A DNA stretch of 63,683 bases, filler included, from Pelomyxa schiedti (GCA_020536535.1; 14 parts of 14 records of this genome joined end to end with filler, not necessarily neighbours in it); one strand, 5' to 3'; numbered from the whole stretch's first letter, positions 48,581 to 52,760 are shown. Translations and numbers: made by a program. Notes: generated by a model not told the origin, from the sequence alone.

Positions 48581-50412
48581 NNNNNNNNNNNNNNNNNNNN
48601 NNNNNNNNNNNNNNNNNNNNNNNNTTAATTAATTAANNNNNNNNNNNNNNNNNNNNNNNNNNNNNNNNNNNNNNNNNNNNTATTTGGGGAGAATGTGGGT
48701 TTCTCTTTTGCCACAACAGTGACACACTGGACACACTGGAGCAGGAACACTCACAACAACATGCCTCACAGCACTCACAGACATTAGAGGTGAAACAAAC
48801 ATCACCGTCACCCAATACAGCAACCTCCACCCTTCTCATTGAATTCCTAACACCTCTCTCACACATCGAAAGCCACATCTCTTCCCTACTGTGAAGATTG
48901 TCCCTAGGTAGTGAAGATATCAACCCTCAGGTTTATTTCCTCGTTCTTTTATGTGTATGTCCTGTATCCTCCAGAACTCACCACGAAACAAAAGAAATTT
49001 TTCTTTGTATGTCAGAGACCATTTCACTCCATCCTCAGCGGCCTCATCACCTCAATCATTTCCTCCTGGAGCATATCGATCACCATTTGACCCTTAATCA
49101 CTGTAAACACTCAGCTTCGTCTTAGAACGAACACCAGAATTGTGCCCAGTTGCAGGCTCCGAAACGACTGCACTTCCGAGAAAACGATTTTGTGTTGGCC
49201 ACTATCTATTCAATCATCTATCATGTGTGTGATGTGTGATCGGAAATCAGGCGGCACCATGGTAAGTTGTTGTGTTTGATCCCAAACAATTTTGTTTTGG
49301 TTTGTGTCTCCTTCACACACTGTATCGCGGATTTCCGATCGAGTGATTGTTGTTGAATCAATAAATAATTTTTCACCCCAGTGATGCCAGTGACTGCTTT
49401 CATTGAAACCTCAGTGAAGGTTTGTGCGGTGCCGGCATCATGAGTATTCCCTGCTATGTTGGTGAACACACGGTATGAAGTTGATAGTTATGATGTATTA
49501 AGTTTAATAGAATTACACAGACCTGGTGTCAAAGAAGCTGATGGATAGACCCCTCAATGTATCTGTGTTCTACGGTATAATTACATCCAAATATTCAATT
49601 ATATCTCTGATCGACCGCGGAGGGACGGGTGACCTCACGATTTAAAGCCAAAGTGACTTCTACTACCGAGACACCACTTTCCTACAGATTCCCAAGGTAG
49701 AGCTACTTGTTTTTCTCCATAAACATTGATGGGTCTGGTAGAGGCTCGGGCACTACTTCGTTCATCAGACATAAGAAAGTATGCACACGCCAAAAATCCC
49801 GCGGTCCCGAGATAAAAGGTTATTATTCTCCACACCACAACCACCATCAAGCAATTCCACGAATTCTGGAGCCTCCTCTCCTCCTCTCACCACTTACCAC
49901 CAAACTCCAAAAACAACAACAGCAAACAACACAAGCCACAAAGCACATGCCAACACAATCACCATGGTCACTGCGAAGTTTCGAAGGCTTTTTTGTGCAA
50001 TTGCCGGGAAAACAAAAAATTAATTACTCCGTGACTCAGAACCAATTTCCCCGGACTTAAATACTGCGGAGAACACAAAAACAAACCAAATAAAAAAACC
50101 AAAGGCAAGATCTGCACATTACTGGTATGCTTGGCGTCACCTTACTTTTTTTCTTTGCCGACGCCTTTGTAGTTTGTGTTTTTTGCTTTTCGACCCAACG
50201 TGGACCGGGAGTTAAGGAGCTCGTTGTAAATGAAGGTGATACACTCTCTCAGTTCGACTGTCCGCTGTTGTGGCGCATTCTGGTATGCATTTTCTTGCTT
50301 TGTTTCCTTCACTTAGTTTTACTTGCGCAACAACCTACAGATCTCACATCCGTTTGATTTGATTTGATCGGTGGGCGCGTTGTCTCGGAGCGTGCGTCTG
50401 CAAACAAGAACC

Positions 50413-50591
50413 GCCAATCCCCGTGGGAGTCTTGCCATGGGTTGGAGCCTTCCGGTTGGCGCGTCTGGACGGCGCGTTTAAGCCCGGGGGACCTCATCTT
50501 GTGACAGACCCTTGCGAGGGGACGTGTCGACGGGAGGCCTTGTCACGGGGGAAAGCTCCGCGATGGGACCTCTGCCGACGCCTCTCTGGCC
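50413..50591 (+). ncRNA. Unidentified structured RNA element, copy 1 (179 nt)
   Basis: Identical to copy 2; extensive stems with G-U pairs on the + strand; GCGA tetraloop; no conserved long ORF. Confidence 0.65.
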
Positions 50592-51339
50592 CTACCTCGT
50601 GTCTGTCGTCATCATGTACTGTCTGCTGCTGCTGATGCATGCTGCTTTTATTATGATGATGATCATCGTCAACAGACAACATCCCCGAGATTGGGTTGAA
50701 GGGGTTTCCCTTGCTTGAGTTCACAACTCAAAGCTAACGTTCCGCGATGCGGAAGGCCCAATCTTCTCTGGAAGACATCAATATTTCTTGGCTGGAAAGC
50801 AAACACCAATTTTGTATGCACCATCTTGCCTGCTCCCTCTAACTGGTTAACAGAAATAAAGCACACACACTCTGCACACTGGCGGCGGTGTTCAAGGAAC
50901 TCCTTGAGTTGAGGGCTTCAACATCACTTTTGACTGTGCCCAGATATGAAGAAGAAGAAGGCTTCTTTCTTTGCCGTTGTCAGGTAAACATGATTCCTTC
51001 TTGTCCCTCCCCACTTTGACCAATTCCGCAGCAAAACAGAGGAATTGTGTTGTTTTATTATCCGGCCGGATAATATATTCTTGTATGCAGTGGATTGAAT
51101 ATATTCTTGTATTCAGTGTGGCTTACAGCAAGTGCGAATCCTTGGTTTTTTCTGCAAGAACGCCGCAACCTCTGTAAGTCCTCCCCAAAATTCACAAAAT
51201 ACTAACCGTTGTCACAGTGAGAAAACTGTCAATGACTGCTCTGCACACTGCACTCTCCATCCTGGCAGGCGAACCTCAGTCTTCTTACCGAATACCGTCA
51301 TCAGAGCGTGCGTCATTTGTTGCAGAACAACAAGCACCG

Positions 51340-51518
51340 GCCAATCCCCGTGGGAGTCTTGCCATGGGTTGGAGCCTTCCGGTTGGCGCGTCTGGACGGC
51401 GCGTTTAAGCCCGGGGGACCTCATCTTGTGACAGACCCTTGCGAGGGGACGTGTCGACGGGAGGCCTTGTCACGGGGGAAAGCTCCGCGATGGGACCTCT
51501 GCCGACGCCTCTCTGGCC
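51340..51518 (+). ncRNA. Unidentified structured RNA element, copy 2 (179 nt)
   Basis: Identical to copy 1 while the flanks are diverged. Confidence 0.65.
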
Positions 51519-52020
51519 TCTCTTCGACTTCTCATCATCGGGCTGCTGATGCACTAATGCTGATGCTTATTGAGTTGGCAACTGCAATCCAGCTGCTGTT
51601 GTGGCCGCATTATATTATATTACCATCCTCGTCACCAGACAACTCCATTGCACATCCTATACTTCCCTTACTACTTCTACTTCTTGGAAGTTGGTGTTTC
51701 TGTCTTGGAGGCAGGTTTGAGACACCCTTTTCCCTTTTCCCTGCTCTCTAACTGGTTGACACAGAAATTTCACACTCACACACTGGTTTGCCGGAGAACG
51801 GATAATGTTCTTCTTGCATGCGGGACTGAATATATACACTCCTGCATACTGTAGTTTTCTGCATGACCGTGACAACCCCTGTAAGTGCTCTCCAAAATAC
51901 AATCCAATAAAATACTAACCATTGTCACAGTGAGAAAAACTATGACGGTGCACTCTCTCCTCTCCATCAATCAGTCAGGCGAACATCATTCTTTCGGCTT
52001 CTGAAGAGCACAGCCGCGCG

Positions 52021-52196
52021 GCCAATCCCCGTGGGAGTCTCGCCATGGGTTGGAGCCTTCCGGTTGGCGCGTCTGGACGGCGCGTTTAAGCCCGGGGGAC
52101 CTCATCTTGTGACAGACCCTTGCGAGGGGACGTGTCGACGGAGCCTTGTCACGGGGGAAAGCTCCGCGATGGGACTCTGCCGACGCCTCTCTGGCC
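52021..52196 (+). ncRNA. Unidentified structured RNA element, copy 3 (176 nt)
   Basis: One substitution and three 1-nt deletions relative to copies 1 and 2. Confidence 0.62.
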
Positions 52197-52559
52197 CTGT
52201 CTCACTTCCTCCTCGTCGACTTCACATCATCGGGCTGCTGATGTACTTGATGCTGCTTATTGAGATCATCAACAGACATGAGAGATTCATTTGAGAACAG
52301 CACTCCTAACAGTAAGGCAACTTTCCCCGCTGCCCAAACTAACCGTGTTGTTTGTATACAGTATACCGGCCAGCCAGTCTCTGTGACCTTGCACCCCAAG
52401 TAACCATAAAGCAAGAAAATTTTTTCTCAAACAAATTTGCCGTTTGTTCTTCCTCCTCCTTATTACCTCTTCTGTGAACCGTTTGGTTGGTGTCGAATCA
52501 GTCGTTGCAGCAGTTCATTGTGCCACTGGTACTCTGACAACATCGTCGGTGTGGGTGTG

Positions 52560-52760
52560 ACCGTTCGTGACCAGTTTGTCGGCCTGTTGATGTCGACGCA
52601 CCCTCGCTGTGGCCGTCAACATCGAAATCAAAAAGTGAATAGACACTATCCTCAACAACACCAGGAATTTCCATTCGCTGCACGTGGGTTGCGTGACTGC
52701 AATTTGTGCTGGAATCAAGGTTCTGTGGGATTGGTGCGTTTGTTGGACCGGTGAATCCTC
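52560..52760 (+). pseudogene. Relic of the 'VRDQFVGL..THPRCG' family
   Basis: Motif present but the ORF terminates early. Confidence 0.45.

Follow-up and report, generated by a model that had tools for sequence, protein, structure and literature searches.

A structured non-coding RNA family with two subfamilies in the amoeba Pelomyxa schiedti

Introduction

Why would a tract of fewer than 180 nt be kept almost unchanged in three consecutive units whose remaining sequence has diverged, and what kind of RNA, if any, does it specify? The question arises in a stretch of DNA of 63,683 nucleotides from Pelomyxa schiedti, a giant amoeba with an anaerobic way of life (GCA_020536535.1), analysed as a whole and referred to below as the window, in which the array lies on the 4478-bp contig JAHLWZ010001591.1. 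An initial annotation had read the tract as an ultraconserved, multicopy, functional ncRNA of a possibly new class. New structured RNA classes are rare in eukaryotes, and the ncRNAs of free-living Archamoebae appear unexplored; a literature search found no description of them. The published P. schiedti genome has 46.5% GC and 7.4 introns per gene, with Smart-seq2 libraries (PMC8887013). We describe the conserved tracts, or cores, as a previously undescribed structured ncRNA family with two subfamilies, type A (176–179 nt) and type B (206–209 nt), and with a known host arrangement. That the cores are a functional structured RNA of some kind is very probable; of which kind is weighed below.

Results

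Three type A cores with sharp limits

The array contains the three copies originally annotated, at the same positions (Table 1). Copies 1 and 2 are identical across 179 nt, with zero further matching bases on either side; copy 3 carries U21C and is 3 nt shorter. Sequencing error is excluded as the source of its deletions, as RNA contigs from two runs (X3 and X4) carry the 176-nt form. This form also accounts for six of the eight copies in the assembly, which makes copies 1 and 2 the odd ones.

The annotation's picture of heavily diverged spacers and sharp boundaries stands for the limits and for most of the spacer sequence: flanks of different units align at 42–66% identity, against a background of 50 +/- 3.5%. 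It does not extend to every part, since the introns before cores 2 and 3 are 78% identical, and nhmmer together with a repeat finder describes the units as old duplicates with homologous introns and short recurring 3' motifs. Likewise, the 17 CpG dinucleotides per core were counted correctly, but the depletion around them is mild (observed/expected 0.56–0.72 outside the cores versus 0.87). Core GC is 66.5% versus 44–46%. No degenerate fourth copy was found on this contig.

Table 1. Features of the array, its host transcript and the type B loci. Positions refer to the window unless a contig handle (L110, L111, L138) precedes them.
Feature	Position	Strand	Remarks
Type A core copy 1	50413..50591	+	179 nt; RNA contigs from 50434 on
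Type A core copy 2	51340..51518	+	179 nt; same sequence as copy 1
Type A core copy 3	52021..52196	+	176 nt; majority form in assembly
Closing stem, copy 2 (predicted)	51340-51343 with 51514-51517	+	GCCA/UGGC; GGCA/UGCC in type B
Left arm, copy 2 (predicted)	51346..51447	+	core 7-108; 41 predicted pairs
Right arm, copy 2 (predicted)	51451..51508	+	core 112-169; three A.C mismatches between G-C pairs
Span jointly covered by several spliced RNA contigs (host transcript)	50413..52404	+	
Spliced intron	50814..50853	+	40 nt; RNA contigs
Spliced intron	50984..51031	+	48 nt; RNA contigs
Short exon	51149..51173	+	template-switch adapter at 5' end; run X4, one contig only
Spliced intron	51174..51217	+	44 nt; 123 nt upstream of core 2
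Spliced intron	51715..51764	+	50 nt; RNA contigs
Spliced intron	51881..51930	+	50 nt; 91 nt upstream of core 3
Spliced intron	52312..52361	+	50 nt; RNA contigs stop near 52404
Public gene model Pelo_18015	50563..52004	+	357 aa; singleton, no Pfam
Block common to window, L110 and L111 (units 2, 3)	51273..52736	+	
Type B copy	L110:9367-9575		209 nt; covariance model and alignment
Type B copy	L138:10025-10230		second full copy
Type B remnant	L111:1050-1115		most of middle deleted
Lone right-arm remnant of type B	L138:10984-11027		after last intron

Several smaller features accompany the cores. The motif GCTGCTGATG follows all three of them (window 50628, 51542 and 52234), as does a second, CAGACA-containing word (50665, 51628 and 52265), and a hairpin of -26 kcal/mol is predicted in the flank of copy 1; possibly, these mark a putative processing signal. 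Three 70-nt windows outside the cores are predicted to be more stable than shuffles (49381-49450, z -3.8; 50956-51025, z -2.5; 51796-51865, z -3.9). Upstream, the word GAGCGTGCGTC occurs at both 50388 and 51304 and is complementary to the left-arm tip. A leader-mediated switch through this word was rejected, its complementarity being no better than that of shuffles. A DNA contig joins 50387 to 51304 with its breakpoint at GAGCGTGCGTC, bypassing copy 1, and tentatively suggests an allele without copy 1; one side of the joint is only 30 nt long.

Core sequences are exonic within a spliced non-coding transcript

Is the array transcribed, and from which strand? A word search in SRA returned four runs, all from a single study on single cells and none of them a small-RNA run. 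Three of them (X1, X3 and X4) yield spliced contigs over the array and represent RNA, as contigs of poly(A)-primed single-cell libraries; X2 is taken as DNA, because its contigs are unspliced and alleles are visible. The RNA contigs define six introns of 40–50 nt, all within spacers, and since these read GT-AG on the plus strand they establish the orientation that the annotation had proposed. Contigs connect the end of core 1, by way of spacer 1, with core 2, and others extend from core 2 through core 3 to about 52404; upstream of core 1 none was found in the three RNA runs. Transcription may start at 51149, at the adapter-bearing short exon. No splice joint bypasses a core, so the cores are exonic. 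Every RNA contig with a core continues into its flanks, in poly(A)-primed libraries that trimmed forms may escape. Intron function is maintained in the host while exon sequence drifts.

Does the host encode a protein? The longest ATG-initiated ORF in the spliced sequence has 115 codons, compared to a mean of 80 and a 95th percentile of 129 in shuffles. The spliced models, searched exon by exon or as public protein ids, gave no Pfam match. When one reading frame that spans the core was used as a protein query, three gene models came up, each a P. schiedti hypothetical protein, and no homologues of the overlapping models were found beyond these loci by protein search. With no ORF above chance, no Pfam domain and gene models that lack outside homologues, we read the host as non-coding: a conserved unit is embedded in a spliced transcript without a credible ORF. 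We judge Pelo_18015, which overlies the array, to be a spurious model, and the same probably applies to all five annotated hypothetical proteins over these ncRNA loci (Pelo_18015, 16090, 18496, 16089 and 6083). The exonic position of the cores in a spliced non-coding host is new beyond the initial annotation, as is the second subfamily described below.

Further copies, gene conversion and conservation

Three further contigs add five type A copies, giving eight of 176–179 nt on four contigs; this count is a minimum, because copies were found only where gene models overlap them. L110 and L111 carry two cores each and are probably alleles of a second locus; L138 is a third locus with a single core, so that loci hold one to three. 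The eight copies differ at just six spots. Part of this identity is explained by gene conversion among cores, which follows from the independence of core type and flank ancestry: copy 2 resembles the first L110 copy, L110a, in its flanks, with 58 of 60 bases matching upstream, yet its core is that of copy 1 and differs from the core of L110a, and the U21/C21 state is shuffled among core positions. "Ultraconserved" therefore describes copies of one species, whose identity owes something to conversion, and for which no homologue elsewhere was found in the collections searched.

Between separate loci the cores are nonetheless far better conserved than what surrounds them. Type A of L110 and L138 differ by 4 changes in 176 nt (97.7% identical; P 1e-5) and type B by 4 in 207 nt (97.6% identical; P 7e-7), with flanks at 71–82%; both P values were computed under the flank rate of 0.115 per nt for L110 versus L138. 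For L110 and L111, which are close alleles, the cores show no clear excess of conservation over their flanks. Run X2 shows zero allelic differences in cores, which is weak evidence because core contigs are collapsed there. The limit of conservation coincides exactly with the closing stem.

A dispersed repeat, one of the outcomes that the annotation had named as fatal to its reading, did not appear: the eight copies sit on four contigs in homologous flanks, with neither a target-site duplication (TSD) nor a terminal inverted repeat (TIR) at the cores, no loose ends with unlike flanks are listed at core limits in the DNA-type run X2, and the genes called on L110 and L138 are listed without any Pfam family of transposase type. 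Outside P. schiedti, searches by exact patterns, in collections almost without eukaryotic genomes, found no homologue; scans of two metagenome, one prokaryote genome and five viral collections gave chance matches only. The best of them, 27 of 29 positions in one phage family, sits in a protein gene and was rejected as chance. BLAST against phages and plasmids found no match.

A second subfamily, type B

With a covariance model built on the right arm, the best non-self match on the plus strand was L110:9501-9566 (19.1 bits, E 0.004 over 26 kb), and a second one adjoins it at L110:9409-9461. Both are arm tips of a 209-nt type B copy. Type B exists as two full copies of 206–209 nt at separate loci, L110 and L138, and at both it lies upstream of type A on the same strand. 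The score of the model is modest by itself, because GC-rich phage DNA used as a control (219 kb, chosen beforehand for its motif words) gave up to 16.4 bits, and the full-length model scores B weakly (10.4 bits). The assignment rests instead on position, ends and homology over the whole length. At the 5' end B starts with GGCAAUCCC and A with GCCAAUCCC, at the 3' end B has UGCC and A has UGGC, and the end-to-end alignment has 118 of 176 positions identical (z 5.1; 0 of 3000 shuffles). In the left arm each strand is significant by itself. We had also considered L110:9366-9428 as a one-arm relative; it was rejected, being the 5' part of the full-length type B. No third subfamily was found in the 47 kb examined.

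Predicted fold and covariation

The predicted fold of type A is a three-way junction in the shape of a Y, in which a 4-bp closing stem bears two long imperfect arms. Its energy ranges from -81.4 to -83.4 kcal/mol across all A variants. These keep every pair of the Y fold, with three one-sided changes, which is not significant by itself; a 2-nt and a 1-nt indel face each other in one helix, with a chance probability of 3–6%. Does the sequence fold better than expected? For the whole core this is not the case, the z of -1.1 on both strands being no better than chance. The right arm alone reaches z -3.1 and is the best survivor when flanks are added to the prediction, and the closing stem is unstable in predictions with long flanks.

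Natural variation is in favour of the Y fold. Between A and B, 12 of the 23 right-arm pairs are the same, 6 have both partners replaced, 3 have one partner replaced and 2 are broken (P 0.002), a count that comprises only two subfamilies and leans towards the fold because the alignment was fitted to the structure. Covariation, which the annotation had proposed to look for, is thus present relative to the type B paralogue. The left arm of A is homologous in sequence to the longer left arm of B. By itself B folds into two arms, and joining its ends costs 0.7–3.3 kcal/mol. The right-arm A.C mismatches of A recur in B. GCC opposite GAC (G-C, C.A, C-G) occurs four times in A, and CAC opposite GCG (C-G/A.C/C-G) lies three to four pairs below the loop; such mismatch motifs are kept between A and B. 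The right-arm stems around them covary, and neither the length nor the sequence of the apical loops is preserved. G-U pairs make up 19 of the 69 arm pairs. Comparison of A and B supports a predicted three-way junction for each subfamily, with the pairing less well tested in the left arm than in the right.

Of the helices drawn by hand in the annotation, the closing stem and the GGCGCG hairpin (p 0.95) reappear in this fold; the long rod and the others cost +6 to +10 kcal/mol (p ~0). The switch or pseudoknot suggested from mutually exclusive helices loses its footing as well. That alternative fold is 6–12 kcal/mol worse than the Y fold and varies between copies. C103U and G120A in one copy would be compensatory in it, but each is a CpG transition and L138 has G120A without C103U, so that the compensation fails.

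Comparison with known RNA families

Could the cores belong to a family that is already known? Rfam scans of the contig piece, the type A core and type B gave best E values above 0.7, with no family at its gathering threshold; the same scan recovers U2 nearby at 141 bits. The absence of recognisable boxes and motifs, noted by eye in the initial annotation, was borne out feature by feature. ARAGORN found no tRNA or tmRNA, and the core has no cloverleaf, T-loop, loop E, polymerase III boxes or T-run, as tRNA, tmRNA or 5S RNA would. For SRP RNA we listed pairs outward from every GNRA, taking the defining helix 8 feature from PMC4605306: an A-C pair with an adjacent 5'-strand G is absent (A133 is followed by C), as are the conserved apical loops of helices 6 and 8, the loops differing between A and B. 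For P4 of RNase P/MRP there is one CR-I-like word near the 3' end, not kept in B, and no CR-V. Neither a U-rich single-stranded Sm site, nor U1, U2 or U6 signature words, nor a complement to the 5' splice site points to an snRNA or SL RNA. Boxes C/D are missing beside the terminal stem, where C/D snoRNA and U3 would carry them; there is no H box on the plus strand, and the core ends in UGGC(C), so that no ACA lies 3 nt from its end. A TTAGGG-type telomerase template is absent, in an organism whose telomere repeat may differ from that type, and short periodic words occur in paired regions only, at chance level.

Ribozyme signatures were sought on the same footing. A relaxed descriptor of the HDV-like nested double pseudoknot, P1-P4 with CNRA in J4/2, gave 0 hits on either strand, and neither the hammerhead core (CUGANGA with GAAA) nor a group I or lariat-capping arrangement (P7 with room for P3 and P8) was found. 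Human SRP/Alu words, the lariat-capping ribozyme, bridge RNA and omega RNA were considered as relatives and found no support. The left arm contains 21-nt stretches with 3 unpaired bases, no asymmetry and 5–6 G-U pairs each. The dictyostelid Class I format (42–65 nt, an 11-nt motif and a variable body) does not describe RNAs of 176–209 nt with a conserved body. What emerges is in keeping with the annotation's reading of a multicopy, plus-strand, functional-looking structured ncRNA without Rfam match.

Discussion

What does the RNA do? Our best reading, a tentative one that falls somewhat short of probable, is a protein-bound structured RNA trimmed from the host transcript. Two observations lead there. 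Mismatches that are conserved while loops are free to vary argue for proteins that recognise helix shape, and conservation that stops exactly at a covarying terminal stem argues for a discrete molecule protected from trimming. RNA polymerase II would make the host transcript; proteins would recognise the shape of the mismatch-studded arms and not the loops; and nucleases would trim the host down to the protein-protected, stem-closed core, leaving a discrete RNP comparable to that of exonic snoRNAs. Such an RNP might serve as a scaffold or decoy for double-stranded-RNA-binding proteins, which is a guess. It is possible, if rather doubtful, that A and B found an undescribed class of eukaryotic RNP RNA, with a stem-closed junction, spaced A.C protein sites, box-independent maturation from spliced polymerase II hosts and a function of its own in Archamoebae.

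Two rivals come close to the trimmed RNP. The arms could be substrates of RNase III/Dicer, with the host as a pri-miRNA-like cluster that releases guide RNAs of 21–27 nt. We regard this as somewhat unlikely. The placement of hairpins in exons of a spliced, polycistronic transcript, loops that vary above mismatches conserved at a fixed distance from them, the symmetric 21-nt stretches of the left arm with their 3 unpaired bases, and the presence of miRNAs across Amoebozoa (PMC11014262) all fit; yet conservation covers the whole 176 nt, ends and junction included, beyond any 21-nt duplex, A and B keep one architecture with bases changed throughout both strands, and the arms are rich in G-U pairs.

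The other close rival, which we consider unlikely, is that the core is never released but acts as a cis module of a long spliced RNA, in stability, export, localisation or as a protein sponge. All RNA contigs link core and flanks, loci hold between one and three copies, and functional introns persist while host exons drift, as this would have it. Limits as sharp as these, together with a terminal stem that covaries, are seen more typically in a discrete molecule, however, and poly(A)-primed contigs are compatible with an additional trimmed form.

Is A or B simply a diverged housekeeping RNA, such as SRP RNA, RNase P/MRP RNA, telomerase RNA or a U snRNA? Size, multicopy genes and concerted evolution would suit one, a U2 gene lies 2 kb upstream at one locus, an A.C pair sits five pairs below the right-arm loop of A, and SRP RNAs have evaded models before (PMC4605306). 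We still find it improbable: Rfam scores are nowhere near significance, the SRP-type G beside the A.C and the GNRA loops are absent and the loops of A and B differ, there is no CR-V, Sm site, 5' splice-site complement or canonical template, and the U2 of P. schiedti is canonical.

Quite improbable, too, is a functionless GC-rich tract or mobile-element relic, kept uniform by (GC-biased) conversion and segmental duplication and transcribed incidentally. Conversion is established, the z of the whole core is unremarkable, and B has suffered a deletion in L111 and, at a second site in L138, a truncation. But conversion leaves the both-sided A/B changes, the facing indels and the limits at the terminal stem unexplained, B is 97.6% identical at separate loci amid flanks of 71–82%, and the copies are few and without TSD or TIR.

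A self-cleaving ribozyme or ligand-controlled two-state switch, the role the annotation had entertained, is very improbable. It is possible to draw alternative helices, the RNA contigs over copy 1 start within its core region, and two changes in one copy look compensatory; against this, the HDV-like, hammerhead and group I tests all fail, the alternative fold is disfavoured and inconsistent between copies, L138 undoes the compensation, and RNA contigs run uncut into copies 2 and 3. That the region codes for the five annotated hypothetical proteins is hardly credible at all: gene models exist and one frame is open through the core in all window copies, but 59% of shuffled cores have at least one open frame, the models read the same core in different frames and lack homologues and Pfam domains, and the core has frameshifting indels and no synonymous variation.

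How does the family compare with named systems? Non-coding RNAs cut from spliced, polyadenylated precursors have precedents (bioRxiv 10.1101/2025.01.08.631648; PMC9564094). Like the exonic snoRNAs of S. pombe snoU14/mamRNA (bioRxiv 10.1101/2025.01.08.631648), the cores are several structured RNAs on one spliced non-coding precursor whose remaining exon sequence drifts, and they have a short terminal stem; unlike them, they lack C/D or H/ACA boxes, a K-turn and guide pockets, and are seen only joined to flanks in contigs. In mode, the cores appear to resemble hosted snoRNA-type RNAs, without being members of any such family. Ustilago telomerase RNA (PMC9564094) offers the precedent of a functional ncRNA from a spliced, polyadenylated, mRNA-like transcript, but the Pelomyxa cores are multicopy and have no template repeat or pseudoknot.

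Dictyostelid Class I RNAs are amoebozoan, lineage-restricted and multicopy like the cores, and a short stem joins their ends; they measure 42–65 nt and have an 11-nt motif, a variable body, a DUSE promoter and often a T-run (PMC7919456), whereas the Pelomyxa RNAs, at 176–209 nt, are conserved throughout, reside in spliced hosts and have no T-run. With the miRNA precursors found across Amoebozoa, mostly of 75–125 nt (PMC11014262), they share long imperfect hairpins and variable loops, but they differ in having two arms in a conserved three-way junction and conservation beyond a 21-nt duplex. The SRP S domain, non-canonical basidiomycete forms included (PMC4605306), is likewise Y-shaped with an A.C mismatch near one arm tip; the cores have no G beside the A.C, no asymmetric loop, no conserved GNRA/GNAR loops and no Alu domain, and are too short for an SRP RNA and placed in a spliced host.

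The covariation-supported fold, the two subfamilies and the host-gene architecture make the family directly testable in cultured Pelomyxa, and searchable in the genomes of Mastigamoeba and Entamoeba. Should it prove to be one of the housekeeping RNAs still missing, or the precursor of small RNAs, it fills a gap for the lineage to which Entamoeba belongs; otherwise it is a new class.

Neighbouring features

A canonical U2 snRNA gene (Rfam 141 bits) occupies L138:7847-8061 on the plus strand of JAHLWZ010000486.1; the type B and A copies follow on that strand about 2 kb further downstream. The interval that separates them from U2 contains an element of about 1.35 kb (L138:8103-9457), which has long inverted ends, repeats the words of these ends internally, includes simple-repeat tracts and has the look of a non-autonomous transposon.

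In the window, all four runs contain contigs that match the 40-nt stretch at 52569-52609 and differ in their flanks. It is a motif of a multicopy gene family, within an unexpressed ORF (52437-52754) for which no homologues were found; in L110 the corresponding sequence begins a gene model of 261 aa, and the copy in the window ends abruptly near 52736. Run X2 shows an allelic skip of 778 nt and dense allelic differences, with 12 substitutions over 206 nt (window 49063-49842 and 49850-50260), which reflect high heterozygosity in the P. schiedti genome. Upstream of copy 1, intron-like GT..AG stretches and an A-rich tract (50125-50172 and 50283-50316), without RNA coverage in these runs, resemble stretches upstream of B in L110 and L138.
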